64,000 nt of DNA, from the sequence record LR756502.1; one strand, 5' to 3'. This document shows, in pieces, positions 3,793 to 63,208 of this stretch. Below the pieces are notes generated by a model. That model was not told the DNA's origin. It saw only the letters and a list, made by a program, of their open reading frames with translations, and searched no databases. The first letter of the stretch is position 1. Each line of letters starts with the position of its first letter. The translations under genes and the position numbers were made by a program.

Positions 3793-3797
3793 CAAAT

Positions 3798-3884: not shown

Positions 3885-3889
3885 CTAAT

Positions 3890-3975: not shown

Positions 3976-4030
3976 CAATCATTAGTGGGGAAAGGACATC
4001 TTTAAGGGGTGAGGTGGGTTCCCTTAAATT

Positions 4031-4115
4031 GGAAGATAAGCTAATCGGGTGATTAGCCACGCTTGGAAAGCGTTGGGTACGTTCAATCGTATGGGCTTCG
4101 ATGCTCTATCTTCCT
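4031..4115 (+). tRNA. tRNA-Ser(GGA)
   Basis: ACGC-TTGGAAA-GCGT, V-arm. Confidence 0.85.
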
Positions 4116-4120
4116 CATAA

Positions 4121-5657: not shown

Positions 5658-5765
5658 ATGAAAACTTTGCACACATATAAAAACGTGATTGACTGGATGT
5701 AAATATCCCGGCTACATAATTATATGTATTCCCAGTCAATAAAAATTGACTGGGATTTTTATTTT
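5658..5765 (+). promoter_or_regulatory. Attenuator 3: leader MKTLHTYKNVIDWM (5658-5702) + terminator (5729-5765)
   Basis: ATTGACTGG (5688-5696) is the exact complement of terminator arm CCAGTCAAT (5732-5740); operon contains RNA ligases and HisRS core. Confidence 0.65.
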
Positions 5766-16570: not shown

Positions 16571-16675
16571 TGCGGGGTAGGGAAGTGGTCATCCCGAGAC
16601 GCTCGTTTTTGATTCTTAAATGATGAAGAAGTGAGATAACGTTTAGATCGTTGGTTCGAATCCAACCCATCGCTA
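16571..16675 (+). tRNA. Initiator-Met-like tRNA interrupted by a 31-nt insert in the anticodon loop
   Basis: AGACG-CTC[31 nt]ATAA-CGTTT; intact D- and T-arms; U1:U72 mismatch. Confidence 0.65.
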
Positions 16676-16947: not shown

Positions 16948-17100
16948 ATGAATAGATTTACTAACATAGAAACAATAGGGTACACAGGGTATGAGGGCGC
17001 GTATAGCGAACTTTTAGTCAGACCTTTGTCTATGTTATAATGTAAAATATTATACAATTTGATAAAATCCAGTCTGATTAATTTCAGACTGGATTTTTTG
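16948..17100 (+). promoter_or_regulatory. Attenuator 4: leader MNRFTNIETIGYTGYEGAYSELLVRPLSML (16948-17040) + terminator (17064-17100)
   Basis: Tyr x3, Glu x3; TAGTCAGAC (17015-17023) pairs with GTCTGATTA (17072-17080); followed by Glu/Tyr tRNAs. Confidence 0.8.
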
Positions 17101-17655: not shown

Positions 17656-17797
17656 ATGAAAAATTTACATAACATATCAGTTGGAGTTATAGCGATAGGC
17701 GCGGGGAGCGTTTGTCTGTGGCTGAACTATGTTTCGTAAATAGTAAAATATTTATCATAAACTAACCCAGTCACAAAATGACTGGGTTTTTTATTTA
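17656..17797 (+). promoter_or_regulatory. Attenuator 5: leader MKNLHNISVGVIAIGAGSVCLWLNYVS (17656-17739) + terminator (17764-17797)
   Basis: Ile ATA x3, Gly x3, Ala x2; TGTGGCTG (17717-17724) pairs with CAGTCACA (17768-17775); followed by Ile(UAU)/Gly/Ala tRNAs. Confidence 0.8.
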
Positions 17798-21385: not shown

Positions 21386-23899
21386 ATGATAGATGAGAAA
21401 ATTTCTAATTTTAAAATTGACACAAAGTTTGTAGATGAGTTCAGTAAAGAGATATATGAGCAAACATACAGATACGGACTAGAAGACATAAATCAAACAC
21501 AATTAAGAGTAGCTAAAGACTTAGCTTCTATCGAAAAAGACCCAGATTATTGGACCCAGGAATTTCTTTGGGCCTTGGAAGATTTCAAATTCTCACCTGG
21601 AGGTCGAATAACATCAAATGCTGGTACTGGATTAAAAGGAACAACCTACATAAACTGCTTTGTTGATGGTTTTATGGGGGAAGATCAAGACTCAATGGAG
21701 GGAATCCTTGATGCTCTTAGAAGACAGGCTCTTATTTTAAAATCAGAAGGTGGTTATGGATTTTGTGCTGATGTGATGAGGCCTAGAGGATCATTTATTA
21801 ATGGCATTGGGAATGAGTCACCAGGATCTGTTAGAATGTTGGATATGTGGGACACTCAATCTGGTGTAATAACAGAGGGAAGTGGTAATAAGACTAAGAA
21901 GGAAAAGGGAAAGATAAAGATACGCAAAGGTGCTCAAATGGTAACAATGTCTTGTTGGCATCCTGATATCGAAGAGTATATAACCGCAAAACAAACACCT
22001 GGCCGCTTAACAAAATTTAATATGTCTGTTCTTATAACTGATGAGTTAATGGATGCTGTTAAAAATAATAAACCATGGGTATTGGAGTTTCCTGACTATG
22101 ACTTACATCCATCAGAGTATAAATCTAACTGGGATGGTAATATTAAAAAATGGAAAGCTCTCGGATATGCAACATCAATATTTAAGACATATGATAATGC
22201 AAATCAGTTATGGGATATAATAATGACATCAACATACAATAGAAATGAACCAGGAGTTCTTTTTGTTGATACGATGAATAGGCTAAACAACCTTTACTAT
22301 ACCGAATATATTACTGCGACAAACCCATGTGGTGAACAAATACTTCCAATTGGTGGGGTTTGCTTACTTGGGTCTATTAACCTTACACAATTTGTTGATT
22401 TTGAAAATAGAAATTGGGATTATGATAAACTAAAGAAGCTTATACCGATAGCTATAAGATTTATGGACAATGTAAATGATAAGACAAATGTGCCTTTGCC
22501 ATCACAGAAGGAATCTCTAGTTAATAAAAGGAGAATTGGTCTTGGTTTACTTGGATATGGGTCTGCTCTAATGATGATGAAGATGAGATATGGATCTAAA
22601 GAGGCTCTTGATCTTACAGAAACACTTATGGAGTTTTTGGCAAACCAGTCCTACCAGTCGTCTGCACTTCTAGCTTCTGAGAAGGGGTCATTTAAACTAT
22701 TTGATAAGGATAAATACCTGGATAGTAAATTTATAGAACAAGCTTTGACCGAAGAAACTAAAAGTATGATTAGAAAGTATGGTCTAAGAAACTCACACTT
22801 ATTATCTATACAACCAACTGGTAATTCATCCGTATTTGCTAATAATGTTAGTGGTGGATTAGAACCTCTATTTATGCCAAAATATATTAGAACTACAATT
22901 ATGCCATATGCTCCTGATGGATTGGATAAACCAAGAAATATTGATTGGGATAATAAAACATTTGAATCCGACTCAATCTGGACCTGGATAAAAGAAGGTG
23001 ATGAGAATTTGATGAGAACTGAGTTTGGTGGATATGTTTGGAAGTTTGATAAATCTAGGGGTTTATTAAGAGAGAATGTTGTTATGGACTATGCTGTTAG
23101 ATTTTTGGAATCAAAGGATCAATGGGATCCAAAGGCTGACTGGGCAGCTACAACAACCGAATTGAGTATTGATGAGCATATTAATACTATGGCAATTATG
23201 TCAAAGTATATTGATTCTGCTATGTCAAAGACTGTTAATTTACCAAACGATTACCCATACGAAGACTTCAAAAAACTATACATCGATATGTATAACACTG
23301 GAACTATAAAGGGTGGCACAACATATAGATCTGGAACAATGACTGTTGTTCTTTCGGAGAAGTCAAGTGATGCTGATGATGTGAAGATAGTTAAGACAAA
23401 TGCTCCAAAGAGACCAAAGTCTTTGAGTTGTGATATTAATCACTTGACCGTACAAGGTGATAGATGGATAGTTATTGTTGGATTACTTGGTAAGGACCCT
23501 TATGAGATATTTGCATTTAGAAAGAAAAACATTAATCTATCTGATAAGATAAAGGATGGTAAGCTAACAAAGGTAAAGAGTGGAAAGTATAACCTTGAGC
23601 TTGATGGGTTTACATTGGAGGATTTGAAGGAACATTTTGAATCTGATGAGCAAGAAGCATTGACAAGAATGATATCAACTTCTCTTAGACACGGTGCTGA
23701 TATTAATTTCATATATGATCAATTGCAAAAGTCAGAAGGAACAATAGTTTCGTTCTCAAAGGCTATATCTAGAACTCTTAAGATATATCTGAAAGAGGGA
23801 TCTGTTGGTTCTTGTGACAACTGTGGTTCACCTGACGGGTTGGTGATGCAAGAAGGATGTTTTAAGTGTAAGGATTGCGGGTACTCAAAATGTTCTTAG
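21386..23899 (+). CDS. nrdJ: Class II (B12-dependent) ribonucleotide reductase
   Basis: PGGRI, INCFV, TNPCGEQ, CLLGSINL, QPTGNSS, SKTVN; C-terminal CxxC..CxxC; no beta subunit nearby. Confidence 0.88.
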   Translation: MIDEKISNFKIDTKFVDEFSKEIYEQTYRYGLEDINQTQLRVAKDLASIEKDPDYWTQEFLWALEDFKFSPGGRITSNAGTGLKGTTYINCFVDGFMGEDQDSMEGILDALRRQALILKSEGGYGFCADVMRPRGSFINGIGNESPGSVRMLDMWDTQSGVITEGSGNKTKKEKGKIKIRKGAQMVTMSCWHPDIEEYITAKQTPGRLTKFNMSVLITDELMDAVKNNKPWVLEFPDYDLHPSEYKSNWDGNIKKWKALGYATSIFKTYDNANQLWDIIMTSTYNRNEPGVLFVDTMNRLNNLYYTEYITATNPCGEQILPIGGVCLLGSINLTQFVDFENRNWDYDKLKKLIPIAIRFMDNVNDKTNVPLPSQKESLVNKRRIGLGLLGYGSALMMMKMRYGSKEALDLTETLMEFLANQSYQSSALLASEKGSFKLFDKDKYLDSKFIEQALTEETKSMIRKYGLRNSHLLSIQPTGNSSVFANNVSGGLEPLFMPKYIRTTIMPYAPDGLDKPRNIDWDNKTFESDSIWTWIKEGDENLMRTEFGGYVWKFDKSRGLLRENVVMDYAVRFLESKDQWDPKADWAATTTELSIDEHINTMAIMSKYIDSAMSKTVNLPNDYPYEDFKKLYIDMYNTGTIKGGTTYRSGTMTVVLSEKSSDADDVKIVKTNAPKRPKSLSCDINHLTVQGDRWIVIVGLLGKDPYEIFAFRKKNINLSDKIKDGKLTKVKSGKYNLELDGFTLEDLKEHFESDEQEALTRMISTSLRHGADINFIYDQLQKSEGTIVSFSKAISRTLKIYLKEGSVGSCDNCGSPDGLVMQEGCFKCKDCGYSKCS

Positions 23900-29157: not shown

Positions 29158-29327
29158 ATGAAAACAATGAATTTAAATATGAATCTAAACACACTGACAG
29201 TGGTGAATAATACGTTATGTATTAGACCTTGTGAGGGTTTTGATCTATTTAATGATTTGTAGTATGGCATAAACATTAATAAAGGATAATCAAAACCCTC
29301 AGTCAAAAACTGAGGGTTTTTTGTTTT
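29158..29327 (+). promoter_or_regulatory. Attenuator 6: leader MKTMNLNMNLNTLTVVNNTLCIRPCEGFDLFNDL (29158-29262) + terminator (29292-29327)
   Basis: Asn x7, Leu x6, Thr x4, Val x2; TGAGGGTTTTGAT (29232-29244) is the exact complement of ATCAAAACCCTCA (29289-29301). Confidence 0.85.
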
Positions 29328-36565: not shown

Positions 36566-38038
36566 ATGAATATCGTAACAAGAATAGCGCCTTCACCGAC
36601 AGGATCCTTCGCCCATATTGGGAACGTAAGAACTCTATTGTATAATTACTTTCTAGCTAAGCGTCACGGAGGTAAATTCCTTGTGCGTCTAGAAGATACT
36701 GACCGTGATCGATATACACCTTCGTTCCTTAACTATTTTAAGGACATGTGTGATTGGTTAGGAATAGTTCCTGATGCTTCTTACTGGAGCCCAGATACAT
36801 CTATTGGAACCTTTGTTCAATCAACAACTGACTATTCTACTAAGATTAATTTCTTACTTGATAATGGGTTTGCTTATTATGCTTTCGATTCTAAAGACGA
36901 TTTGGATAAGGCACATAAGTCAATTGCTAATTTCAAATATGATTCCACTACTCGTTTGAGTATGAAGAACTCTCTAACTATGTCTAAGGACGATGTTGCT
37001 AACGCAATTGTAACAACTCCTTATGTTATTCGTTTTATGGTGTCTCCAAATATCGATATAACTGTTAATGATGCAATCCTTGGTGATATCAAAATCAGTT
37101 CAAATACTATCGATGATAAAGTTTTAATGAAGTCCAACGGGGTTCCATCATATACATTGGCTAATGTTTGTGACGATCACGATATGGGGATTACTCACGT
37201 GCTTCGTGGTAACGAGTGGGTACCTTCCACACCTTGTCATATTCTACTTTACAAGGCGTTTGGTTGGGATGTTCCTACATTTGCTCACTTACCATTGATT
37301 ATGAATCCAGATGGTAAAGGCAAACTATCTAAGAGAACTGCTGCTAAGTATGGTATTCCAATTGCCCCATTAGGTTATACTGATGGTGATGGTATCTATG
37401 TAAATGGTTGGAAAGACCTTGGGTACGATCCAAAAGCTTTCATAAACGCTTTATCCTTAATTGGTTGGAATCCTGGACATGATGTTGAAATTATGTCAAT
37501 GGGTGATATGATTAAAAACTTCTCACTTGACCGTGTTCATAAGGCCGGTGCTCGTTTTGATATGGATAAGGCTAAATGGATTAACTCTCAATATATTAAG
37601 AATACACCAAACTCTTGTTTGCTTCCTTATATTGATGTTAAAGATGATAGGTACTCTGATGATAAGTTAGATATGATTATATCTTTAGCTAAAGATAGAT
37701 CTGACTTCAAATACGATTTGAATAAAATTGTAGATTTATTCTTCAATGATCCAATCATTAAAGACTATTCAAAGATTGATGATAACTATACAAGAGTTAT
37801 GTCAACATTCAACTATAAGATTGACTCAGTTGACTTTAGTGATGTTAATTTAATTAAAGATAGTATATCAAAAATCTGTGACGATTTAGGTGTTAAGATG
37901 GGTAAAGTAATGCCTGGATTAAGAATGGCTTTGGTTGGTGGAATTGCTGGTCCTGACTTAATGACAACAATGTTAATTCTTGGTAAAGACCAAGTTAAAG
38001 ATAGAATTATCAAATCTGGTAAAAGAGTAACTGTGTAA
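36566..38038 (+). CDS. gltX: Glutamyl-tRNA synthetase
   Basis: RIAPSPTG..HIGN, RLEDTD, DDHDM.ITHVLRG.EW, KLSKR, anticodon-binding helical domain. Confidence 0.95.
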   Translation: MNIVTRIAPSPTGSFAHIGNVRTLLYNYFLAKRHGGKFLVRLEDTDRDRYTPSFLNYFKDMCDWLGIVPDASYWSPDTSIGTFVQSTTDYSTKINFLLDNGFAYYAFDSKDDLDKAHKSIANFKYDSTTRLSMKNSLTMSKDDVANAIVTTPYVIRFMVSPNIDITVNDAILGDIKISSNTIDDKVLMKSNGVPSYTLANVCDDHDMGITHVLRGNEWVPSTPCHILLYKAFGWDVPTFAHLPLIMNPDGKGKLSKRTAAKYGIPIAPLGYTDGDGIYVNGWKDLGYDPKAFINALSLIGWNPGHDVEIMSMGDMIKNFSLDRVHKAGARFDMDKAKWINSQYIKNTPNSCLLPYIDVKDDRYSDDKLDMIISLAKDRSDFKYDLNKIVDLFFNDPIIKDYSKIDDNYTRVMSTFNYKIDSVDFSDVNLIKDSISKICDDLGVKMGKVMPGLRMALVGGIAGPDLMTTMLILGKDQVKDRIIKSGKRVTV

Positions 38039-43687: not shown

Positions 43688-46384
43688 ATGTTAAAAAGAA
43701 TATTTCTAAGTTGTGCAATCCTCCTCTTGTCTTTGTATACAAAGGCTCAAATGGTAGGAACCGACGCATATATACAAGGTACTAGCGTTGAAATTGGTAT
43801 TAATGGATTAGGTGGATATGAGGGAGTTAACCAAACTACATCACCACCTCCAGCGGGATATCATGCTCGTGGTACATTTCTACCATTTGGATTTATTGCA
43901 AATCCCCAGGTAAATTCTTGGGCTACTTATGATGGTGACTTTTTTACTCCTGGTAGTCCAGAGAATGGTTGGGGATTCCAAATTGGGTCAACAACCGGAT
44001 CCGCTAACTCTAGAGGTAATAATTGTGCTGGTTTGCAACAAATTAATGGTAGTTTTACAAACTGGTCTCATAACTTCAACTGTTATAATGCTACATGGGA
44101 AGGAGATTACACTTCGGCAACAGACATTCACTTTACTATAAGTTATGATCTTGTTCAGACTGATTTATTTTACACAACAACTGTTTCTATAACAAATAAT
44201 ACTACTGCTACTATTCCAGATTTATATTACTATAGAAATGTTGACCCTGATAATAATGAGGAGATAAGTGGTACCTTTACAACAACACAAACAATAGTAA
44301 GTCAACCAGCTTCTGGTTGTAACCTAGCACACGTTCAGGCCACATCACCAACACCTTGGAACTCGTATCTTGGGTTTGCTGCTATTGGTGCTAATTGGAG
44401 AGCAGACTATGGTGGATTTAGTAATAGAGCCGCTGCTGATTTATGGACTGGTCTTGGATTTACACAAACTGTTGGTGCCACAAATACCGCAGATGAGGGA
44501 ATATCACTAGCATATAGAATACAAAATCTTGCTCCAGGTGCTACAGAAACATTTAAATTTGTGGTTATTTTAGACCCATCATCAGCTACGGCAGCAATTA
44601 ACAACCTACTTTACTTATCATATCCAGGTTCATTAACAGCTCCGCCATCTGTTTGTACACCTTATGCCGATACAATTAGAACATGTGGTGGACCAGTTCC
44701 TATTAACATTGCCGGACCTATTGTTGGTGATTTTAGCTGGACGTGGACACCAACTACTGGTTTAACACCAATTACTGGACCATCTGTTAGTGCTAACCCT
44801 AGTGTAACAACAACATATACCGCAGTTGGTACACCTTTAAGCGCTTGTGTAACACCGGTTTCACTAACATTTGTTGTTTTAATAACTCCGGGTGGTGGAA
44901 CCGCACCTTATATAACACCAGTTGCTCCAGTATGTATCACGACACCACCTTTTAATTTTGTGGCTGATACTCTTGGTGGAGTATGGAGTGGAACAGGAAT
45001 TAGTCCTACAGGAACCTTTAATCCCGCAACTGCTGGAGCTGGTACGTATTTAATAACATATACGACAACCAATACTTGTAATCCTATAGATACAACATAT
45101 ATTACAGTAAGTGGTTCAGACCCTACAATAACTACACATATTCCTGTTTGTGCAGGTTCCTCACCTTATACTTTAACTGCCGCATCTACTGGTGGTGTAT
45201 GGAGTGGTGGTGGAATTAGTCCTACAGGAGTTTTTACACCTAGTACTGCCGGTACTTTTGTTATAACATACACACTTTCAGGGTTGTGTGCAGCAACAGA
45301 TACCGTAACATTAGTTGTAAACCCAACCGTACCACCGATAACAGGTATTTCATACATCACACCTGTATGTATAAGTGGTACTAACCCAACACCAATACCT
45401 GTATCAGGATTCACTGTCGGTGGTGTATATAGTTCAACACCAGGATTATCTTTGAATACTGGAACTGGAGTTGTAAATTTAGCGGGTAGTACACCTGGTA
45501 CATATACAATAACATATTCTTATGCAGCAACTGTTTGTGGACCGGCAGGTTCAAGTAGTACAACTTTAGTTATAACTCCACTAATAGTGCCAGTTTTAGG
45601 ATTCTCATATAATAGTGTTTGTGTTGATGGTGTTGATCCATCCCCTATCACAGTTGCTGGATTTACAACCGGTGGTGTTTACTCATGTCCTGGTTTATCA
45701 ATAAACCCAGCAACTGGAGTAATAGACTTATCATCTAGTTCACCTGGTACATATACTGTTACATATACTGTTACAGGATCATCTGTTCTATGTACCTCTG
45801 GTGGTACTAGTACATCTACTATAACTATTAAACCACTTCCGGTTATAATTATATCTTCTGATCAAACAATATTTCTTGGTCAAAGTACGCTTATATTTGC
45901 TAGTGGTGGAACAATATATAATTGGAGTCCCTCACAAGGGTTGAATACAACTACTAATGATAGTGCTATTGCTTCACCAGTTGTAACAACAACATATTGT
46001 GTTGGTGTTTCTAGTTTAGGTTGTATTGATACAATGTGTGTTAAAGTTAATGTTGAAATTCCTTGTCCAAGTAATAGAAATATGGGAGTACCAAATGCAT
46101 TTACTCCAAATGGTGATGGTAATAATGATCAACTATGTTTAGATGGTTGGGATGATTGTATCTCAAACTTTGAAATAAGAATATTTGACCGTTGGGGTGA
46201 GAAAGTATTTGAATCTAAAAATCCTGGCTTTTGTTGGGATGGTGTGTATAAGGGTAAGCCTTTAGATCCAGCTGTCTTTGTTTACTACATTACTGCATCA
46301 TATAATGTTGATGGTGTTTTACCAACATCACAGACAAGTACTACTAAGGTTAATAAAACAGGAAATATCTCATTGATTAGATAA
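43688..46384 (+). CDS. Secreted Thr/Gly/Pro-rich surface protein with T9SS type B (gliding-motility-associated) C-terminal domain
   Basis: Signal peptide; repeated Ig/PKD-like units (GGVWSG.GI...G.F.P); VPNAFTPNGDG.ND..IFDRWGEKVFES..WDG.YKG. Confidence 0.88.
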   Translation: MLKRIFLSCAILLLSLYTKAQMVGTDAYIQGTSVEIGINGLGGYEGVNQTTSPPPAGYHARGTFLPFGFIANPQVNSWATYDGDFFTPGSPENGWGFQIGSTTGSANSRGNNCAGLQQINGSFTNWSHNFNCYNATWEGDYTSATDIHFTISYDLVQTDLFYTTTVSITNNTTATIPDLYYYRNVDPDNNEEISGTFTTTQTIVSQPASGCNLAHVQATSPTPWNSYLGFAAIGANWRADYGGFSNRAAADLWTGLGFTQTVGATNTADEGISLAYRIQNLAPGATETFKFVVILDPSSATAAINNLLYLSYPGSLTAPPSVCTPYADTIRTCGGPVPINIAGPIVGDFSWTWTPTTGLTPITGPSVSANPSVTTTYTAVGTPLSACVTPVSLTFVVLITPGGGTAPYITPVAPVCITTPPFNFVADTLGGVWSGTGISPTGTFNPATAGAGTYLITYTTTNTCNPIDTTYITVSGSDPTITTHIPVCAGSSPYTLTAASTGGVWSGGGISPTGVFTPSTAGTFVITYTLSGLCAATDTVTLVVNPTVPPITGISYITPVCISGTNPTPIPVSGFTVGGVYSSTPGLSLNTGTGVVNLAGSTPGTYTITYSYAATVCGPAGSSSTTLVITPLIVPVLGFSYNSVCVDGVDPSPITVAGFTTGGVYSCPGLSINPATGVIDLSSSSPGTYTVTYTVTGSSVLCTSGGTSTSTITIKPLPVIIISSDQTIFLGQSTLIFASGGTIYNWSPSQGLNTTTNDSAIASPVVTTTYCVGVSSLGCIDTMCVKVNVEIPCPSNRNMGVPNAFTPNGDGNNDQLCLDGWDDCISNFEIRIFDRWGEKVFESKNPGFCWDGVYKGKPLDPAVFVYYITASYNVDGVLPTSQTSTTKVNKTGNISLIR

Positions 46385-49440: not shown

Positions 49441-49860
49441 ATGAAACACTTAAGAAGATTTAATGAAAGTCTAGAAGGTAATCTAGAAGAGATAAATGAT
49501 ATATTTACAGTTGAAGTTGCTGATCATTTTAATTTAGTTAGAATATCATATGACGAATATAATGGTCAGGCTGAGGGTGGTGGACCACTTGAAAGAAATA
49601 AATCAACAGATCCATCAATTTATTACATTGAAGACTACTTTAGTCGGCCTGAACTAGATCCGGTAGGATTTGTAAGAATAGAAATGGCTATAAGTAATGA
49701 CAATGCTGAATTATTTAAATTAAAATATTTATCACTATTTGAGGAAAGATTATCAAAAATAGGATTTAAAATGAGTGTAAAGTATTATTACGGTAAGGTA
49801 AGTGGTAGAATATTCAGACGAAATTTTACCGAGGTAACTATGATAATAGAAGCACTATAA
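49441..49860 (+). CDS. N-terminal-tag protein (MKHLRRFNES)
   Basis: Shared motif. Confidence 0.65.
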   Translation: MKHLRRFNESLEGNLEEINDIFTVEVADHFNLVRISYDEYNGQAEGGGPLERNKSTDPSIYYIEDYFSRPELDPVGFVRIEMAISNDNAELFKLKYLSLFEERLSKIGFKMSVKYYYGKVSGRIFRRNFTEVTMIIEAL

Positions 49861-49957
49861 AATTAAAATTAATTTGGTAAATTGAAAACTTCTTCCTATA
49901 TTTGTAATAGAATTAAAAATAACAAAAACACGCTTTAAAAAGCTGATATATACTAAA

Positions 49958-50119
49958 ATGAAAAACTTAATCTTAAATATCGCAATTCAAGTACAACGTC
50001 AAGTTGTTGTCGATCAGGATCAACCGGATACGACTGAGGCTAATTGCGATTTTATAAGAGAGTAAAATAATACTTGAATTATACAAACCCAGTTAGTCTA
50101 TGATTAACTGGGTTTTTTT
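49958..50119 (+). promoter_or_regulatory. Attenuator 7: leader MKNLILNIAIQVQRQVVVDQDQPDTTEANCDL (49958-50056) + terminator (50085-50119)
   Basis: Asp x4, Gln x5, Pro; GGCTAATTG (50038-50046) pairs with CAGTTAGTC (50090-50098); followed by Pro/Asp tRNAs. Confidence 0.75.
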
Positions 50120-50130
50120 ATTGCTTAAAA

Positions 50131-50203
50131 CGCGAAGTGACTGAGGTTTAAGCGAGAGTGGTCTGGAGCCATTTTTTAGTCAGTTCGATTCTGACCTTCG
50201 CGA
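50131..50203 (+). tRNA. Atypical tRNA-Pro(UGG), C33/A37
   Basis: C1:G72, A73; AGTGG-TCTGGAG-CCATT. Confidence 0.65.
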
Positions 50204-50211
50204 CAAAATTA

Positions 50212-50286
50212 CGGAAATTGGGCTAATTGGTAAGCCGCTTCATTTGGGATGAAGACATCGTGTGGGTTCAAGTCCCGCATTTCCGA
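50212..50286 (+). tRNA. tRNA-Pro(UGG)
   Basis: CTTCA-TTTGGGA-TGAAG. Confidence 0.9.
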
Positions 50287-50291
50287 CAAAT

Positions 50292-50366
50292 GGCTCGTGG
50301 TACTGCACGGTGTGGTAACCTGTTTGTCAAACAGGATACAGATGGGATCATTACCCATACGAGTCA
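50292..50366 (+). tRNA. tRNA-Asp(GUC)
   Basis: CCTGT-TTGTCAA-ACAGG; unusual D-arm, A73. Confidence 0.8.
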
Positions 50367-50371
50367 CAAAA

Positions 50372-50443
50372 GGTCTATTAGTGAAATGGCTATCATCCCA
50401 CACTGTCACTGTGGAGTAGACGGATCGAAACCGTCATAGACCG
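50372..50443 (+). tRNA. tRNA-Asp(GUC)
   Basis: CCACA-CTGTCAC-TGTGG, G73. Confidence 0.9.
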
Positions 50444-50508
50444 CAAGAGATTAATTTGGAATCTTAAACCTTGCAAAAGCGAGGACTGGTAATATTTTAA
50501 TCTCATAT

Positions 50509-50583
50509 GGTTCGTGGAACTGCACGGTGTGGTTACTTGATTGTCAATCAGGACACAGACGGGATCGTTACCCGTACGAATCA
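50509..50583 (+). tRNA. tRNA-Asp(GUC), paralogue of 50292
   Basis: CTTGA-TTGTCAA-TCAGG. Confidence 0.8.
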
Positions 50584-50588
50584 CAAAA

Positions 50589-50662
50589 CGAGAAGTGACT
50601 AAGGCTTTAAGCACGGGTGATCAGGAGTCATCTGTTAGTGGGTTCAATTCCAACCTTCTCGA
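50589..50662 (+). tRNA. Atypical tRNA-Pro(AGG), C33/A37
   Basis: C1:G72, A73; GGTGA-TCAGGAG-TCATC. Confidence 0.65.
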
Positions 50663-50670
50663 CAAATATA

Positions 50671-50744
50671 AAGATGTTGATCGTCTAATGAAAGGTTCCC
50701 CTACGGAGGGGAGGGTTTGGGTTTGATTCCCAAGAGACGTTTTT
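50671..50744 (+). pseudogene. Degenerate tRNA-Arg(ACG)
   Basis: TCCC-CTACGGA-GGGA and T-arm; weak acceptor. Confidence 0.5.
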
Positions 50745-50752
50745 ATGTTAAC

Positions 50753-50822
50753 GGTGCTGTCGTCTAATGATAGGATGCTCCCATTGGAGGGAGTGATGTA
50801 GGTTTGATTCCTAACTGTACCG
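50753..50822 (+). pseudogene. tRNA-like gene with 6-nt anticodon loop (ATTGGA)
   Basis: CTCCC-ATTGGA-GGGAG; D- and T-arms present. Confidence 0.5.
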
Positions 50823-50833
50823 CAAAAATAATA

Positions 50834-50902
50834 CGAGATGTAGCCTATTGGCATGAGGCACTAGTTTTGTGAACTAGACGAAGCAGGTTCCTGTCATCTC
50901 GA
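50834..50902 (+). pseudogene. Pro-type body with UGU anticodon and deleted T-loop
   Basis: CGAGATG/CATCTCG; CTAGT-TTTGTGA-ACTAG; GCAGG-TT-CCTGT. Confidence 0.55.
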
Positions 50903-50936
50903 CAAGAGAGAAACAAAATATTAATAAATAGAAATT

Positions 50937-51052
50937 ATGACAACTTCATTTCAGCAACAACAGCAACAACAAATTAATCGAACAGATTGATGTGGAATGA
51001 TATTGTTTAAATATTACACCCGTTAGTCTGAGGAGATTAACGGGTTTTTTAT
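50937..51052 (+). promoter_or_regulatory. Attenuator 8: poly-Gln leader MTTSFQQQQQQQINRTD (50937-50990) + terminator (51018-51052)
   Basis: 7 consecutive CAG/CAA codons; CAGATTGATG (50983-50992) pairs with CGTTAGTCTG (51021-51030); followed by 4 tRNA-Gln and glnS. Confidence 0.9.
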
Positions 51053-51123
51053 TGTCCGATAGTGTAGAGGTAACACAAGGGTCTTTGGTCCCCTTATCAC
51101 TGGTTCGATCCCAGTTCGGATAA
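51053..51123 (+). tRNA. tRNA-Gln(UUG)
   Basis: U1:A72; CTTTGGT loop. Confidence 0.85.
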
Positions 51124-51130
51124 CAAATAT

Positions 51131-51214
51131 TGCGGAATCCCATAATGGCATTGGTCCTGACTTTGAATCAGGTGGAATGAAAATTCTGTGTAGGTTCGAA
51201 TCCTACTTCCGCAT
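51131..51214 (+). tRNA. tRNA-Gln(UUG) with long variable arm
   Basis: CCTGA-CTTTGAA-TCAGG; V-arm GGAAT-GAAA-ATTCT. Confidence 0.85.
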
Positions 51215-51219
51215 CAAAT

Positions 51220-51292
51220 TCCTCTTTGGTCTAATGGCTAATGACGTGTCCCTTTGACGGATAAGGTGGTGGTTCGATTCCATCAAGAGGAA
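51220..51292 (+). tRNA. tRNA-Gln(UUG)
   Basis: TGTCC-CTTTGAC-GGATA. Confidence 0.85.
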
Positions 51293-51297
51293 CAAAA

Positions 51298-51369
51298 TGT
51301 CTTATAATATAATGGTTAGTATAACCGCCTCTGAAGCGGTTTGTCTTGGTTCGAGTCCAGGTGAGACAA
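51298..51369 (+). tRNA. tRNA-Gln(CUG)
   Basis: ACCGC-CTCTGAA-GCGGT. Confidence 0.9.
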
Positions 51370-51397
51370 CTAAAAATTAATTTAAACTAAAACAATT

Positions 51398-52999
51398 ATG
51401 AATTTCATTGAAGATAAAATAATAGAGAAAAATAACTTAGATAAACTAAAGTTAAGATTTCCACCAGAAAACTCAGGTTATATCCACCTGGGTCATGCCA
51501 AATCTATCTGTCTTAATTTTGGACTAGCATTAAAATATAACAGACCTTGTAATTTAAGGTTTGATGATACTAACCCATCCAATGAATCTGACGATTTCAC
51601 AAGATCAATAATTGAAGATATCAAATGGTTAGGATTCACACCATCTGAGACTCTATATACCTCTGATTATTTCTCTGAACTATACAACTATGCAATCATC
51701 CTAATTAGAAAAGGATTAGCTTACGTTGATGATTCAACATCAGAAGAAATTGCCTTATTAAAAGGAACACCAACATCTGTTGGTAAAGATTCTCCATATA
51801 AATCAAGAACTATCGAAGAGAACTTAGACTTATTCAATAGAATGAAATTAGGTGAATTCACAGAGGGTTCTAAAACACTTAGAGCAAACATTGATATGAC
51901 TTCATCTAATATGATATTGAGAGATCCTATCATATATAGAATGATTAATAAGACACACCACAATGTTGGTGATGCTTGGAAGATATATCCAATGTATGAT
52001 TTTGCACATCCATTGTCTGACTATATTGAAGGTATAACTGACTCTTTGTGTACTATGGAATTTGAGGTACATTTGCCTTTATATATGTGGGTATTGAAAA
52101 ATTGTGATTTAAAAAATTCTTTACCGGAAGAAACTGAGTTTGCTCGATTGAACATTGATTTTACAATAATGAGTAAGAGAAAACTAAAGAGATTAGTTGA
52201 AGAAGGATTTGTTTCTGGATGGGATGATCCAAGAATGCCTACTATCTCTGGATTAAGAAGAAGAGGATTTACACCAAAAAGTATTAGAGATTTTTGTGAA
52301 GAAATTTCTGTAACAAGAAGTAACTCTATAATTAGTCATAAAGTATTAGAAGAGTGTTTAAGAACAGATTTGAATAAGTCAGCTAATAGAATGATGGGTG
52401 TTATTGACCCTGTTAAATTGACTATTACTAATTGGGTTGGTGGTACTGAATGGGTTGAAATAGAGAATAACCCAGAAGATCCAAACGCTGGAACTAGATT
52501 GGTTCCTTTTACTGGAGTGTTGTGGATTGAGATAGAAGACTTTAGATTAGAAGCTGATAAGAAATTTCACAGATTAAAGTTGAATGAAGAAGTTAGATTA
52601 AAAGGTGGATACGTTGTTAAAGCAACCGATGTTGTTATGAATGGTGATGTTATATCTGAGATAAAATGTACATTCGATCCTAACTCTAAATCTGGAATGG
52701 TTTTAGATAGAAAGGTAAAAGGAGTAATTCACTGGGTATCTGTTGAACACGCTGTTAACTTAGATGTTAATGAGTATGATACTTTATTTACTGAATCTAA
52801 TCCTGATGATTTAGAAGATTTTACAACTTGTATTAATCCTAATTCTTTAATTGTGAATACAAAGGCTATGTTTGAACCACATATAATGGCACTTGAAGTT
52901 GGTGTTCCGGTTCAAATGATGAGAAAAGGATATTATTGTCTTGACAAGGATGGTGTTTTTAACAAGACCGTTTCATTGAAAGAAGGTTGGAAAGGATAA
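51398..52999 (+). CDS. glnS: Glutaminyl-tRNA synthetase
   Basis: RFPPENSGYIHLGHAK, LRFDDTNP, YPMYDFAH, SKRKL, GWDDPRMPTI.GLRRRG, VKGVIHWVS. Confidence 0.95.
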   Translation: MNFIEDKIIEKNNLDKLKLRFPPENSGYIHLGHAKSICLNFGLALKYNRPCNLRFDDTNPSNESDDFTRSIIEDIKWLGFTPSETLYTSDYFSELYNYAIILIRKGLAYVDDSTSEEIALLKGTPTSVGKDSPYKSRTIEENLDLFNRMKLGEFTEGSKTLRANIDMTSSNMILRDPIIYRMINKTHHNVGDAWKIYPMYDFAHPLSDYIEGITDSLCTMEFEVHLPLYMWVLKNCDLKNSLPEETEFARLNIDFTIMSKRKLKRLVEEGFVSGWDDPRMPTISGLRRRGFTPKSIRDFCEEISVTRSNSIISHKVLEECLRTDLNKSANRMMGVIDPVKLTITNWVGGTEWVEIENNPEDPNAGTRLVPFTGVLWIEIEDFRLEADKKFHRLKLNEEVRLKGGYVVKATDVVMNGDVISEIKCTFDPNSKSGMVLDRKVKGVIHWVSVEHAVNLDVNEYDTLFTESNPDDLEDFTTCINPNSLIVNTKAMFEPHIMALEVGVPVQMMRKGYYCLDKDGVFNKTVSLKEGWKG

Positions 53000-53030
53000 T
53001 TTTCCAACCTTTCTTTTTAATATATAACCT

Positions 53031-54213: not shown

Positions 54214-54338
54214 ATGAGAAAGATAATTAAATTAAAAGATGATCGTTATTTATGGACTGACTGCCTCGCAGATTAGTGATAGATAACTATTACCTATAAT
54301 CTTCAAACCCAGTCAGAAATGACTGGGTTTTTTATTTT
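54214..54338 (+). promoter_or_regulatory. Attenuator 9: leader MRKIIKLKDDRYLWTDCLAD (54214-54276) + terminator (54305-54338)
   Basis: Asp x4; CTGACTG (54257-54263) pairs with CAGTCAG (54310-54316); directly before aspS. Confidence 0.8.
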
Positions 54339-54362: not shown

Positions 54363-55640
54363 ATGAAAAGAATAAACGTAAATCAATTAGAAAACTTTAT
54401 CGGTCAAACTGTACTGGTAAAAGGATGGGTATCTCAATTTAGAGAACTTAAAAAAATGTCTTTCCTTATTTTAAGAGAAAGAACTGGATATTGTCAAATC
54501 ATTATCCCAAAAGAAATTAGTGAATCACTTTCACCTGAGTCTGTTGTCGAGGTTATCGGAACAGTTAAAGTAGAAAGTCAATCTCGTTATGGTGGTTATG
54601 AAATTGTAGCTGAGTCAGTTAAAGTAACATCAGTTGCCCAACTACTTCCTTTTCCTATAAACAGAGAAGAAGGTATTCCCGCTTTCAACACATTAAACAT
54701 ATTTAGACCTTTAACATTAAGAAAGGAAAAAGAAAGATGTATATTCAAAATTCAATCTGAGATTATCTGGGCTTATAGAGAATATTTAAGAAGTCAAGGG
54801 TTTACTGAAATACAATCTACTAAAATGTCTGCAGCTGGATTAGAAGGTGGATCAGAAATGTTTGAGATAGAATACTTTGGTCAAAAAATGTATTTAACTC
54901 AATCACCACAGTTTTATAAACAAATGATGGTTGGTGTTTATGAAAGAGTATTTGAAGTTGGTAAAGTTTACCGTGCTGAAGGTTCTAACTCCAACAAACA
55001 CTTAACCGAGTTTGTTGGTTTTGAATTCGAAATGGGATTCATTGAATCTGTTGAAGAAGTTATGCAAATGGAAGAAAATGTATTTGAGTATATCTTTACT
55101 CACTTAACATCTGTTTGTGAGAAAGAATTGGGATATTTAGAAGTAGAACTTAAATTTAATCCTATTCCAAGAGTAACTTACGCTGAGGTGATTGAGATTA
55201 TAAAAAATGAATATGGAATTACTTATGAGAAAGTAGGATTAAATACTGAAGCTGAAAGATTAATTTCTGAGTATATCTTTAGTAAGACTGGTTCTGAATT
55301 TGTTTTCATTACAAAATATCCACTTTCAGAAAGACCGTTCTATGCAATGCCTTCTGTTGAAGAAGGATGTTCAGAGACATTTGAATTGTTATATAAGGGA
55401 ATGGAGATTACTTCTGGTGGTCAACGTATTCATAACTATGAAGAATTAGTAAAATCAATTGAGTCTAAGGGATTAAACCCAGAAGCTTTTGAAAGTTACT
55501 TAATGGCTTTTAAGTTTGGAATGCCAACACATGGTGGTATGGGTATTGGATTAGAAAGAGTTGTTAAACAGATGTTAAATTTATCATCAGCTGAAGAAGC
55601 TTCTTTAATTCCAAGAACAAAAGAGAAGTGGATACACTAA
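54363..55640 (+). CDS. aspS: Aspartyl-tRNA synthetase, short archaeal/non-discriminating type
   Basis: OB-fold N-terminus, LTQSPQFYKQ, YRAE..HLTEF, EITSGGQRIH, PTHGGMGIGLER; no GAD insertion. AsnRS not fully excluded. Confidence 0.85.
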   Translation: MKRINVNQLENFIGQTVLVKGWVSQFRELKKMSFLILRERTGYCQIIIPKEISESLSPESVVEVIGTVKVESQSRYGGYEIVAESVKVTSVAQLLPFPINREEGIPAFNTLNIFRPLTLRKEKERCIFKIQSEIIWAYREYLRSQGFTEIQSTKMSAAGLEGGSEMFEIEYFGQKMYLTQSPQFYKQMMVGVYERVFEVGKVYRAEGSNSNKHLTEFVGFEFEMGFIESVEEVMQMEENVFEYIFTHLTSVCEKELGYLEVELKFNPIPRVTYAEVIEIIKNEYGITYEKVGLNTEAERLISEYIFSKTGSEFVFITKYPLSERPFYAMPSVEEGCSETFELLYKGMEITSGGQRIHNYEELVKSIESKGLNPEAFESYLMAFKFGMPTHGGMGIGLERVVKQMLNLSSAEEASLIPRTKEKWIH

Positions 55641-62159: not shown

Positions 62160-63098
62160 AAAAAGTCTACCCCTTCGTCCTCGATGGGTAATATCCAAAT
62201 AAAGACGCAAATAGGATGTTTCAGACTTTGTACCAAGCTTCGACTTCGGTTGTTGTGTAGGTAGGGCGGCTTATAGTCCTTAAATAAACCTCGAAAGGGG
62301 GATAAAGTGAGTATCATTGCTAAATGATATTTGCGGTTTGAACTGAAAGGTTTGAGCTCGAGTAAGCAAGCGAAATACCACAAAATCTGTAGTAATGAGG
62401 GTAACTCCGTAGTGAAACGATTTTGTGATTGGGTGAACGTAGGTCACTTGATTGACTTCGGAAGAAGAACAGGAATAATTCGTAGGAATTTTGTGAGAAA
62501 TATCGGCTTAACCGGCTAGTATGATTGCGAGTTCTAATTCAAGAGATGTCTTAAAGTTGAAAGACAATTCTTCTACCAGGTGGTGCTGTTGAAGAACATT
62601 AATCTGACTACCAAGTTGGTAGGTATCATCGCAAGGTGGTATCGTGATGAAGAAATCTTAAAGAATTGTGATGGAGGCATCACACAGAGTAGTTCAGTAT
62701 TTTGTCTGTCAAAAACGGATGAAGCTGAGAGGAGACCACTACTTTGACTTAATCTACAAGCACAAAAAATTTACTTATGATGTAAAAACTATAACTAAAT
62801 CAAAAGTGTTTCCTAGTTATCAATGAAAATTGACTACTTAGCCGTGAGTTGTTCACGGTCACATTAAGCCCGAAAGGCGGATGTGATTTCAGAGAAAAGC
62901 TTATAGAGGGTCGAACCTCTAATCAGTTCGCAAGACTGAATAAGTGGAGTAAATGGAGAATAGTTGATAACTTAAGGAGTGGTTGGTCTAACTAACCGTC
63001 ATTGACAAGTTACTACTCAAAAGGTAGTGGATAGATTTGGGAATAAATAATCCAAACAGAGGCTTGTTGTTTTAGGATGTAATCTCAGTCCTTTTTTT
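62160..63098 (+). ncRNA. Large (~0.9 kb) structured ncRNA, GOLLD/ROOL-class candidate
   Basis: No credible ORF, higher GC, many hairpins (CCTC-GAAA-GGGG, GAG-GGTAA-CTC, TATCATC-GCAA-GGTGGTA, GTGATG/CATCAC, CCGTGA/TCACGG, AGAGG/CCTCT), flanked by tRNAs, ends in U-tract. Family not verified. Confidence 0.7.
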
Positions 63099-63100
63099 AT

Positions 63101-63173
63101 GGCCTTTTCGTCTAGTGGTTAGGACGAATATCTTTTCAGATATTAAACAGCGGTTCGAATCCGTTAAAGGCTA
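63101..63173 (+). tRNA. tRNA-Glu-type gene with 8-nt anticodon loop
   Basis: GGCCTTT/AAAGGCT; AATAT-CTTTTCAG-ATATT. Confidence 0.75.
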
Positions 63174-63177
63174 CAAC

Positions 63178-63208
63178 AACCCACCGATCTGGTGGGTTTT
63201 TTTATTTT
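63178..63208 (+). terminator. Intrinsic terminator
   Basis: AACCCACC-GATCT-GGTGGGTT followed by T-tract. Confidence 0.85.

Follow-up and report, generated by a model that had tools for sequence, protein, structure and literature searches.

A Likely Leader-Peptide Attenuator with a Poly-Glutamine Run Upstream of Four tRNA-Gln Genes and glnS in a Huge Phage Genome

Results

The stretch of DNA analyzed here (the window, 64,000 nucleotides) comes from the 642-kb "Mahaphage" genome LR756502.1, for which a Bacteroidetes host is predicted. It contains a short open reading frame (ORF) with seven consecutive glutamine codons, an intrinsic terminator, four tRNA-Gln genes, and a glutaminyl-tRNA synthetase gene, glnS (Table 1), all of which had been proposed in a sequence-only reading of the locus and were confirmed at the same positions. 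The first tRNA-Gln gene begins 2 nt past the U-run of the terminator, and no promoter or terminator was found between the last tRNA-Gln gene and glnS. The glnS product scores 618.3 bits against the equivalog model TIGR00440 (cutoff 425.8), matches the class I E/Q catalytic and anticodon-binding domains (PF00749, PF03950, PF20974), and has visible HLGH and MSKR motifs.

Table 1. Positions of the features at the poly-Gln locus, numbered from the first letter of the window
Feature	Position	Strand	Remarks
Bacteroidetes-type promoter, TTTG-N20-TATATTTG	49873-49904	+	Regex scan; likely operon start, with the poly-Gln attenuator inside the operon
First-tier attenuator, leader MKNLILNIAIQVQRQVVVDQDQPDTTEANCDFIRE then stop	49958-50122	+	Asp, Pro and Gln codons; terminator 50085-50115 plus U-run
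A/T-rich box AAAATATTAATAAATAGAAATT	50915-50936	+	Directly 5' of the leader ATG; conserved in relatives
Leader ORF MTTSFQQQQQQQINRTD then stop	50937-50990	+	17 codons; ATG 50937, TGA 50988-50990; ATG ACA ACT TCA TTT CAG CAA CAA CAG CAA CAA CAA ATT AAT CGA ACA GAT TGA
Seven tandem Gln codons	50952-50972	+	CAG CAA CAA CAG CAA CAA CAA (2 CAG, 5 CAA)
Segment 1, AUUAAUC	50973-50979	+	Ile-Asn-Arg codons, adjoins Gln run; pairs with segment 2 in the minimum free energy (MFE) fold
Segment 2, CAGAUUGAUG	50983-50992	+	Asp codon and stop; alternative partners segment 1 or terminator 5' arm
Conserved box UGGAAUGAUAUUGUUUAAAU, in most relatives GUAUUGUCUAAA	50993-51012	+	3' strand of outer stem
Intrinsic terminator	51018-51051	+	Segment 3 51018-51029, loop GAGG, segment 4 51034-51045, U-run 51046-51051
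Four tRNA-Gln genes	51053-51370	+	ARAGORN; Rfam tRNA scores 53-60 bits
tRNA-Gln(UUG), three genes	51053-51124, 51131-51215, 51220-51293	+	
tRNA-Gln(CUG)	51298-51370	+	
glnS, glutaminyl-tRNA synthetase	51398-52999	+	533 aa; starts 27 nt after last tRNA-Gln gene
Operon-end terminator	52982-53020	+	Terminator scan; overlaps glnS stop

The run of glutamine codons, which mixes CAG and CAA as the sequence-only reading had said, exceeds in length every other single-residue run in the window, all six frames considered, its own opposite-strand shadows excepted. The A/T-rich box before the leader resembles the boxes that precede other leaders in the window, contains no Shine-Dalgarno sequence, and is presumed to be the translation-initiation region; translation of the leader is itself inferred from sequence alone. 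The terminator consists of a 12-bp stem (hairpin ΔG -16.3 kcal/mol) followed by TTTTTT, and terminator-like sites are abundant in the region (12 found, 1.4 expected). That the hairpin at 51018-51045 ends transcription at the U-run is a prediction from its sequence.

A regular-expression scan based on the known Bacteroidetes promoter consensus returned 16 full matches on the plus strand and none on the minus strand. One of these, at 49873, is the likely start of the operon. The same scan found no TAnnTTTG box between this promoter and the poly-Gln leader and none between the leader with its terminator and the tRNA-Gln genes. A hidden promoter between leader and tRNA-Gln was considered and rejected, since no TAnnTTTG box is present and the sigma-70 scan stayed at chance level. 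Because the gap is only 2 nt and lacks such a box, no promoter fits between terminator and tRNAs, and tRNA-Gln and glnS must therefore be expressed by read-through alone. Upstream in the same operon lies the first-tier attenuator, whose downstream genes are two tRNA-Pro and three tRNA-Asp genes (50131-50584) followed by tRNA-like genes to 50902; relatives keep a PQPQ..DQDPD motif before Pro/Asp tRNAs. We place the poly-Gln unit as a second, internal attenuator of an operon whose promoter is probably that at 49873, an arrangement inferred from sequence. Some relatives have a promoter directly 5' of the poly-Gln leader.

In the MFE fold of the untranslated leader, segment 1 pairs with segment 2 as an anti-antiterminator hairpin (50973-79:50985-91, AUUAAUC:GAUUGAU), flanked by an outer stem and followed by the terminator, with a z-score of -6.4 against 200 shuffled sequences. 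The outer stem joins the conserved box to codons 1-6 of the ORF (50939-50943 and 50946-50953); whether this box has an additional role, for example as a pause site, is not established. Segment 2 can alternatively pair with the 5' arm of the terminator (50983-50992, CAGAUUGAUG, with 51021-51030, CGUUAGUCUG) over 10 bp that include 3 G-U pairs. The sequence-only reading had proposed exactly this antiterminator (2:3) pairing; the 1:2 hairpin was absent from it and is both predicted and conserved. Folding 21 versions of the leader, we obtained the combination of 1:2 hairpin, outer stem, and terminator in most of them, most clearly in leaders of the INxTD type. When a ribosome footprint was masked on a Gln codon, segment 2 paired with the 5' arm in eight of nine folded versions (-13 to -18 kcal/mol), the automatic hairpin parse having failed for the ninth (L011), and a footprint at the stop codon left little or none of this pairing (0 to -5 kcal/mol). 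In these models, which are in silico only, the placement of the segments meets the requirement of an attenuator, namely that a stalled ribosome disrupts 1:2 and a ribosome at the stop codon blocks 2:3.

An in-frame poly-Gln ORF lies 55-75 nt 5' of a tRNA-Gln cluster in 24 distinct relatives on huge-phage contigs. These leaders span 14-26 codons with 4-8 Gln codons in the relatives; start codon, frame, and stop are conserved, and the position of the stop shifts along with the structure. In 18 aligned versions the last three Gln codons change at third positions alone, between CAA and CAG. The sequence-only reading would have been refuted by a Gln tract that drifted out of frame in homologs, which is the case in none of the 24 distinct versions. 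Its further idea, that the CAG/CAA mix mirrors the CUG and UUG tRNAs downstream, failed as a rule: there is no clear relation across relatives, which average 1.2 CAG codons per leader where a tRNA-Gln(CUG) is present and 0.9 where it is not (counted by hand). The conservation excludes a chance origin of the leader.

The leader is found at every phage-type tRNA-Gln-cluster locus with enough upstream sequence. It is absent from phage glnS loci that lack tRNA-Gln and from about 54 probably cellular glnS loci of 51-54% identity. It thus tracks the tRNA-Gln cluster and not glnS as such, and stays with the cluster when glnS lies elsewhere. A pattern scan of viruses yielded 9 true cases among 11 hits, and a scan of 185,579 cellular genomes yielded none among 12; the 12 cellular hits were rejected as chance matches, being inside genes and without a short ORF or tRNA-Gln.

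The alternative helices are maintained across this diversity. The 2:3 helix was assessed sequence by sequence, through duplex energies against shuffles and a cross-compatibility matrix, and formal pair counts were limited to helix 1:2, because MAFFT alignments of whole leaders kept segments 1 and 2 in register and left the terminators out of register. Of 21 distinct versions, 20 have a 2:3 duplex stronger than those of their dinucleotide shuffles (p 0.002-0.044), and the remaining one, L020, has p=0.052. Two divergent relatives carry different yet complementary pairs, GGGUUCCGG:CCUGGAACU in L007 and GAGUAGCU:AGCUGCUU in L019, and each fits its own partner better than foreign ones by 2-4 kcal/mol; the margin for L020 is 0.3. 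In helix 1:2, 88.8% of cells in the aligned relatives are paired and two pairs show double changes. Among close relatives the variation in both helices is mostly one-sided or wobble, and fully compensatory changes are confined to three to five divergent lineages. A terminator is present in all versions, its stem differing in sequence and retaining its pairing. Of 21 versions, 19 have segment 2 beginning 10-12 nt past the Gln run, a spacing that approximates the downstream reach of a ribosome; relative to the stop codon its position varies (-23 to +1 nt). Four relatives have the stop 19-23 nt past the point where segment 2 begins, so that a ribosome terminating there would leave part of the segment uncovered.

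These data bear on whether the element could be an RNA sensor that works without translation, in which the anticodon of uncharged or total tRNA-Gln pairs with the CAA/CAG repeats in the manner of a T-box, or in which the CAA repeats are merely an unstructured spacer. In its favor, the CAA repeats lack structure and are the complement of the UUG anticodon, and T-box riboswitches are known to control aminoacyl-tRNA synthetase genes in other bacteria. Against it, the T-box model (RF00230), defined by a Stem I specifier loop and a T-box antiterminator sequence, finds no match, and neither does any other Rfam leader or riboswitch family, even at E<=5; the element is only ~115 nt long and has neither Stem I nor a T-box motif. 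In addition, ATG, frame, and stop are conserved, the last moving with the structure, the constant spacer of 10-12 nt that separates segment 2 from the Gln run agrees with the footprint of a ribosome, and the interleaved codons of leaders before mixed tRNA clusters (described below) suit decoding by a ribosome and not a single specifier. We regard this explanation as very unlikely. More generally, Rfam leader families (His_leader, Trp_leader, Leu_leader, Thr_leader, and others) gave no match at gathering score anywhere in the window, and searching 49850-51120 at up to E=5 returned only weak chance hits to unrelated families. Identity with a known RNA family was accordingly rejected for want of a covariance-model match.

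The poly-Gln unit is one of about ten tiered, paralogous units and belongs to a leader family that is genome-wide. The window holds nine further units of short ORF and hairpin, located before tRNA clusters, before AspRS, or, in one case, before unidentified small ORFs, and in eight of the nine the leader codons match the genes that follow (Phe/His/Lys, Lys, Arg/Ser, Glu/Tyr, Ile/Gly/Ala, Asn/Leu/Val/Ile/Thr, Pro/Asp, and Asp). For the eight leaders of tRNA clusters, the poly-Gln leader included, the true pairing of leader with cluster outranks every other among 40,320 permutations (p about 2.5e-5). Leaders of mixed clusters interleave several different codons. Seven of the nine further units show antiterminator pairing with their own terminator 5' arm; no such pairing occurs in the Lys unit, and assessment of the AspRS unit was by eye only. 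The Lys leader at 1590-1619 has a hairpin and neither a U-run nor an antiterminator partner, and may possibly work differently; the leader at 5658-5702 has a full switch and no recognizable cognate target. An automatic screen of related contigs recovered 36 distinct terminator-tRNA junctions, and at 33 of them there is a short ORF in which the matching residues are abundant. On tRNA-like stretches, ARAGORN at relaxed thresholds gave inconsistent calls, and some anticodons were read by eye.

Another possibility is that the hairpin closes off the upstream Pro/Asp tRNA unit as an ordinary terminator or insulator, or serves as a processing signal, and that the short ORF senses nothing, being either fortuitous or a ribosome loader that, for example, shields an untranslated tRNA transcript from Rho. 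The leader does directly follow a run of tRNA genes, similar-looking plain operon-end terminators occur in the window at 24099, 38049, 52982, and 63178, and ribosome loading could in principle matter, tRNA operons being untranslated. An ordinary terminator, however, would leave tRNA-Gln and glnS without the read-through that the 2-nt gap and missing promoter make necessary, and would account neither for an in-frame Gln run conserved in 24 versions nor for an antiterminator pairing that is conserved and covaries. A generic ribosome-loading ORF, likewise, needs no matching codons, and eight further leaders in the window have them. We therefore consider this explanation unlikely.

Discussion

The poly-Gln element is, in our judgment, likely a ribosome-mediated (leader-peptide) transcription attenuator that senses the supply of Gln-tRNA(Gln) and sets transcription of the tRNA-Gln genes and glnS, an interpretation that has no experimental evidence behind it. 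Comparative evidence strongly supports what the sequence-only reading had suggested, a Gln-sensing attenuator over four tRNA-Gln genes and GlnRS resembling the his leader, and the regulation itself remains an inference, as do the direction of the response, its dependence on Gln-tRNA supply, and its physiological trigger. The attenuator would read the speed of CAA and CAG decoding, which amounts to the supply of Gln-tRNA(Gln). Host RNA polymerase would start at the 49873 promoter, and a ribosome would translate the leader during transcription. When Gln codons are decoded quickly, the ribosome would reach the stop codon and cover segment 2, the 3:4 terminator would form, and transcription would end in the U-run, 2 nt short of the first tRNA-Gln gene; without any translation, 1:2 pairing aided by the outer stem would likewise allow the terminator to form. 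When charged tRNA-Gln is scarce, the ribosome would stall within the Gln run and cover segment 1, leaving segment 2 free to pair over 10 bp with the emerging 5' arm. With the terminator blocked in this way, polymerase would read into the four tRNA-Gln genes and glnS, and RNase P would cut the leader from the first tRNA. The net effect would be negative feedback that provides Gln-decoding capacity on demand. The scheme assumes that transcription and translation are coupled in Bacteroidetes hosts and that leader-peptide attenuation operates in them.

The demand could arise from CAA use by the A+T-rich genes of the phage or from loss of host tRNA during infection. In 16 phage genes, which are A+T-rich, we counted 99 CAA and 35 CAG codons. 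If glutamine itself were short, extra tRNA and GlnRS would not help, and a benefit therefore requires that tRNA or synthetase be the limiting factor. It can be asked whether the attenuator is real and its signal a different one, the general capacity of the host for translation or its starvation for glutamine (nitrogen), so that it would serve timing of the phage's tRNA expression and not homeostasis. Classical attenuators do sense amino-acid starvation through the same charged-tRNA signal, and the cause of slow decoding cannot be distinguished from sequence. Against this alternative, the products are tRNAs and the synthetase for the very codons sensed, the logic of pheST, and a separate leader with matching codons for each cluster favors codon-specific feedback. 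We consider it improbable and retain sensing of Gln-tRNA(Gln) supply as the preferred reading.

A bolder reading, toward which the evidence tips without settling the matter, extends this logic to the whole genome: phages of the Mahaphage clade that infect Bacteroidetes would run a codon-by-codon, demand-sensing network in which every tRNA cluster, along with two or more synthetase genes, lies behind its own codon-matched attenuator. The network would be tiered, the first leader carrying all codons of the downstream genes and internal leaders those of sub-clusters. If this is true, a phage could gauge at which codons decoding is slow in the infected cell and replenish exactly the corresponding tRNAs; it could also detect and make good the tRNA losses that result from host shut-off or from tRNA-cleaving anti-phage defenses. 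The network would be a first in three respects, as ribosome-mediated attenuation of tRNA genes, as a glutamine attenuator, and as a viral system of this kind.

These observations bear on why and when large phages use their tRNAs, as the sequence predicts synthesis on demand upon slow decoding of particular codons. The family offers a natural set of compact (~115 nt), codon-specific sensors that would operate without Shine-Dalgarno sequences in a Bacteroidetes context, as well as an annotation rule: from the composition of a leader one can predict which tRNAs or synthetases follow it, including odd tRNAs missed by standard finders. We found no prior description of the element in the literature searched, which did not cover subscription journals, and the words "leader" and "attenuat" do not occur in the paper that published LR756502.1.

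The textbook cases of leader-peptide attenuation are pheST and the operons of amino-acid biosynthesis; in this virus the logic of the mechanism appears to govern non-coding outputs, tRNA genes, together with synthetases. Like hisL, trpL, leuL, thrL, pheL, and ilvL of enterobacteria, the phage unit combines a short ORF bearing tandem regulatory codons (the seven Gln codons parallel the seven His codons of hisL), four segments that form an anti-antiterminator, an antiterminator, and a terminator, and an intrinsic terminator 5' of the genes under control; read-through is likewise the predicted outcome when a ribosome stalls at the cognate codons. It differs from them in lacking sequence or covariance-model similarity, in its amino acid, glutamine, and in having tRNA genes and a synthetase rather than biosynthetic enzymes as its output; it also resides in a phage genome with a Bacteroidetes host, among about ten tiered paralogous units, and lacks a Shine-Dalgarno sequence. 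A classical attenuator for glutamine is not known, as the sequence-only reading had remarked and as the literature searched bears out, and to our knowledge none has been known for many of the amino acids represented in this leader family, glutamine included.

The nearest functional precedents lie in the control of synthetases. The pheST attenuator of E. coli (pheM) is known to place a synthetase under leader codons for its own amino acid, a feedback through charged tRNA, though it controls protein-coding genes only, whereas the phage unit has the cognate tRNAs first and the synthetase last. T-box riboswitches share the purpose, sensing the charging of a specific tRNA and antiterminating transcription of synthetase genes, but they bind the tRNA directly and without a ribosome, whereas the phage element has a conserved, translatable ORF. 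Arrays of tRNA genes also occur in T4, T5, KVP40, and the huge phages, and synthetases in the huge phages (Al-Shayeb et al. 2020); such arrays are generally thought to help translate phage genes or to stand in for host tRNAs, and codon-sensing control of the tRNA clusters of large phages is not known to us. Set beside these systems, the poly-Gln unit reads as a variant of leader-peptide attenuation, not previously described as far as we could find, in which a phage directs the mechanism toward tRNAs and an aminoacyl-tRNA synthetase.

Results

Every element of the his-leader-like, Gln-sensing attenuator that the sequence-only reading had proposed ahead of four tRNA-Gln genes and glnS was found where that reading placed it, including the seven tandem Gln codons mixing CAG and CAA, which form the longest homopolymeric run of the window when all frames are compared. 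The claimed complementarity between the stop-codon region and the 5′ arm of the terminator also held exactly (50983-50992 with 51021-51030; 10 bp, 3 G-U). The first of the four tRNA-Gln genes (three UUG, one CUG) begins at 51053, with the U-run of the terminator 2 nt upstream, and the phage's own genes favor CAA (99 CAA versus 35 CAG in 16 genes), a preference that fits this tRNA set.

Searches with the GlnRS protein as bait yielded 10 loci in viral contigs and 80 in metagenomes, and a scan of the viral collection for the leader pattern added 11 stretches. All phage-type loci that contain a tRNA-Gln cluster and extend far enough upstream carry a short Gln-run ORF 55-75 nt ahead of the first tRNA-Gln. 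The earlier reading had suggested searching related phages for such ORFs and had named loss of the Gln tract in homologs as grounds for refutation; we found them ahead of tRNA-Gln clusters in 24 distinct versions (e.g., MTTTQQIQQQQINQTD, MTTFTQYQQQQQINRTD, MKNFIQQQQQQQTLTESSYCFV, MVNITINIQQQQQQQTLNKGSGIALS, MKNLTLQQQQQMIKLD), across which the Gln run is kept. The last three Gln codons of 18 aligned versions change solely at the third position, to A or G, as expected under selection on coding. Phage-type glnS loci without an upstream tRNA-Gln cluster have no Gln-run ORF, indicating that the leader tracks the tRNA cluster and not glnS as such, and none was found at ~54 loci whose GlnRS is only 51-54% identical, many of them on contigs of cellular size. 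The leader DNA pattern matched 12 times in 185,579 cellular genomes, never with a short ORF or tRNA-Gln, and we rejected these as chance matches within genes. In three metagenome contigs (L022, L024 and L025), glnS lies downstream of an Asn/Ile/Arg/Thr/Cys/Val/Leu tRNA cluster, not of tRNA-Gln, and the leader of that cluster (…NLNMNLNNTLNMVVNTLCIRP…) has Cys, Ile and Arg codons matching its tRNAs.

In isolation, the leader folds into three elements (z = -6.4). One is a hairpin that pairs AUUAAUC (segment 1, 50973-50979, comprising the three codons that follow the Gln run) with GAUUGAU (50985-50991, the Asp codon and stop, within segment 2); the second is an outer stem joining codons 1-6 to a conserved box 3′ of the stop; and the third is the terminator. 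Most relatives give a comparable fold, the INxTD-type leaders most clearly. When we masked the footprint of a ribosome whose A site holds a Gln codon, using textbook footprint sizes, and removed the 3′ arm not yet made, the stop-region segment paired with the terminator 5′ arm (segment 3) in eight of nine versions, at -13 to -18 kcal/mol; hairpin parsing failed in the ninth, from related contig L011. Placing the footprint over the stop codon instead left this pairing weak or absent.

Of 21 distinct versions, 20 have an antiterminator duplex (2:3) more stable than those of dinucleotide-shuffled leaders (p 0.002-0.044); the exception is L020 (p = 0.052). In most relatives this duplex remains AGAUUGA:UCAAUCU, its wobble variants being UUAGUCU, UCAGUCU and UUAAUCU, and three divergent lineages carry unrelated yet still complementary sequences: L007 (GGGUUCCGG:CCUGGAACU), L019 (GAGUAGCU:AGCUGCUU) and L020. 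L007 and L019 favor their own partner over a foreign one by 2-4 kcal/mol, L020 by only 0.3. The evidence for covariation comes from few divergent lineages. For the 1:2 hairpin, the putative anti-antiterminator, pairing across 18 versions reaches 88.8%, and two pairs differ on both sides; the pairing is lost once the partner is slid by one column or more. Spacing is the most informative regularity: in 19 of 21 versions, segment 2 starts 10-12 nt past the last codon of the Gln run, while its offset from the stop codon varies between -23 and +1 nt, so the constant is how far a ribosome on the Gln codons reaches and not where the ORF ends.

The box 3′ of the leader stop, GUAUUGUCUAAA, is kept in relatives even where the remaining leader differs, and similar AUUGU boxes lie 3′ of the Phe/His and Arg/Ser leaders. 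It supplies the 3′ strand of the outer stem, opposite the CAA-UAC (Gln-Tyr) codons; its sequence is conserved beyond the needs of pairing, and no role beyond the outer stem is explained. It might be a pause site.

No promoter box was found between the terminator and the tRNA-Gln genes or just upstream of the poly-Gln leader, which directly follows tRNA and tRNA-like genes (50131-50902). The nearest promoter precedes the Pro/Asp leader, whose terminator (50085-50115) is near-identical in sequence to the poly-Gln terminator and is followed by two tRNA-Pro and three tRNA-Asp genes. This arrangement makes the poly-Gln unit a second-tier attenuator within a longer operon, and the first leader has Gln as well as Asp and Pro codons, fitting its position upstream of everything. 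Three related contigs (L008, L011 and L094) have a TAnnTTTG box of their own before the poly-Gln leader.

The + strand carries nine additional short ORF-hairpin units; each has a strong terminator apart from the Lys unit, in which the hairpin lacks a U-run. In eight of the nine, the residues mirror the downstream genes. For the eight tRNA-cluster leaders, poly-Gln included, none of the other 40,320 possible permutations scores as well as the true leader-cluster pairing, itself one of that number, and enrichment in its own residues holds for each leader taken singly. Anticodons of the Arg/Ser cluster, read by eye, show that serine AGY and UCN codons and isoacceptors are both present. In seven of the nine units, a segment in or at the end of the ORF pairs with the terminator 5′ arm and is sequestered in the unmasked fold; no antiterminator partner was found for the 5′ arm of the Lys unit, and the AspRS unit was judged by eye only. 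An automatic screen of related phage contigs gave 36 distinct terminator-tRNA junctions (tRNA ≤45 nt after the terminator), 33 of them with an upstream short ORF rich in cognate residues (e.g., PQPQ…DQDPD before Pro/Asp and NLNMNLNNTL…CIR before Asn/Ile/Arg/Thr/Cys/Val/Leu). First-tier leaders also hold codons of clusters further downstream, suggesting a tiered arrangement.

The unit at 5658 has its own promoter box (5603), a terminator at 5730-5755 and an 11-nt ORF segment, GAUUGACUGGA, that pairs with the terminator 5′ arm. Small basic ORFs are all that follows it, with neither a tRNA nor a synthetase among them.

Coordinates of the leader units and other features of the window
Feature	Position	Strand	Remarks
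Poly-Gln leader ORF	50937-50990	+	product MTTSFQQQQQQQINRTD; Gln codons CAG CAA CAA CAG CAA CAA CAA
Box 3′ of leader stop	50993-51012		GUAUUGUCUAAA
Poly-Gln terminator hairpin	51018-51045	+	12 bp, then U6
glnS	51398-52999	+	27 nt past last tRNA-Gln; own terminator at its end
Nearest promoter	49873-49904	+	then short ORF 49958-50065
Pro/Asp leader	ORF 49958-50065, unit 49958-50115	+	…VVVDQDQPD…; then Pro, Asp
Phe/His/Lys leader	ORF 930-1016, unit 930-1079	+	MRTINKHKHFSKLNKWFSNHRFEAKAFC; then Phe, His, Phe, later Lys
Lys leader	ORF 1590-1619, unit 1590-1650	+	MKTKRKYKR; then Lys x3
Arg/Ser leader	ORF 3420-3494, unit 3420-3547	+	MKTTIKNTSSRSRSSKSGEVRLYS; then Arg, Ser x4, Arg
Leader-like ORF, no clear target	ORF 5658-5702, unit 5658-5755	+	MKTLHTYKNVIDWM
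Glu/Tyr leader	ORF 16948-17040, unit 16948-17097	+	…IETIGYTGYEGAYSEL…; then Glu, Tyr, Glu, Tyr, Glu
Ile/Gly/Ala leader	ORF 17656-17739, unit 17656-17788	+	…ISVGVIAIGAGSV…; then Ile, Gly x3, Ala
Asn-etc leader	ORF 29158-29262, unit 29158-29320	+	MKTMNLNMNLNTLTVVNNTLCIRP…; then Asn x2, Leu, Val, Ile, Thr and others
AspRS leader	ORF 54214-54276, unit 54214-54330	+	MRKIIKLKDDRYLWTDCLAD; then AspRS
Promoter boxes	850, 3394, 5603, 16774, 29078, 36502, 49873, 54202 and others	+	TTTG…TATATTTGTA
GluRS	36566-38035		promoter upstream, no leader
Non-discriminating AspRS	54363-55637
Large CHU_C protein	43688-46381
Ribonucleotide reductase	21386-23896
tRNA-like genes missed or misread by ARAGORN	1410-1580, 3700-3795, 3889-3975, 4028-4118, 16572-16674, 50589-50902
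GOLLD RNA stretch	62685-63198		Rfam RF02032, full-length, 275 bits, model 1-416
tRNA directly 3′ of GOLLD	63101-63174		anticodon loop not readable by ARAGORN
Terminator after this tRNA	63178-63198

The window matches with full identity the sequence near 422,100 in the 642,428-bp genome LR756502.1, recorded as an "uncultured phage". In the source paper, genomes of 634, 636, 642 and 735 kb rank as the largest complete ones from phages and were assigned to the "Mahaphage" clade, with Bacteroidetes hosts predicted (PMC7162821). The window itself has three features consistent with this assignment: its G+C content (32.7%), the CHU_C type-IX domain, and 16 matches on the + strand, with 0 on the - strand, to TTTG-N17-21-TAnnTTTG, the Bacteroidetes promoter consensus. 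CHU_C is a type-IX secretion signal domain, a Bacteroidetes hallmark. The -7 box of the 54202 promoter ends only ~5 nt ahead of the AspRS leader ATG, a spacing that raises the possibility of a leaderless or nearly leaderless transcript.

The window encodes GlnRS, GluRS and a non-discriminating AspRS, together with 44 or more tRNA genes that are clustered according to amino acid. Many detected tRNAs (Lys, Glu, Gln, Thr, Asn) are 80-89 nt long, which suggests inserts or long extra arms. Genes missed or misread by ARAGORN include, by eye, Ser(UGA), Ser(GCU), Ser(GGA), Trp(CCA)-like, Pro(AGG/CGG/UGG)-like and His(GUG)-like genes, and one such tRNA-like gene scores in Rfam as tRNA-Sec.

Discussion

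The poly-Gln unit likely represents canonical ribosome-mediated attenuation, though translation, termination and regulation are all inferred and none has been shown directly. In this model, charged tRNA-Gln would be the signal and tRNA-Gln and GlnRS the output, so that decoding capacity would be under negative feedback driven by demand. Termination 2 nt upstream of the tRNA would follow when decoding is fast or when the leader is not translated; a stall at CAA or CAG would allow the antiterminator to form and transcription to read through, after which RNase P would presumably trim the leader off the first tRNA. The normal trigger could be codon-usage mismatch, host shut-off or host tRNA-cleaving defenses, and the sequence cannot tell which.

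No Rfam leader or T-box model matched the poly-Gln unit, and we found no prior description in the full-text literature searched or in the source paper, although coverage was incomplete and priority is not excluded. The unit meets all sequence-level defining features of leader-peptide attenuators and is predicted to share its mode of action with hisL and trpL, and most of all with the pheST (pheM) attenuator. It differs from known attenuators in the amino acid sensed, in the genes it would regulate, which are tRNAs, in its location in a virus, in belonging to a set of multiple, tiered units, and in its Bacteroidetes setting.
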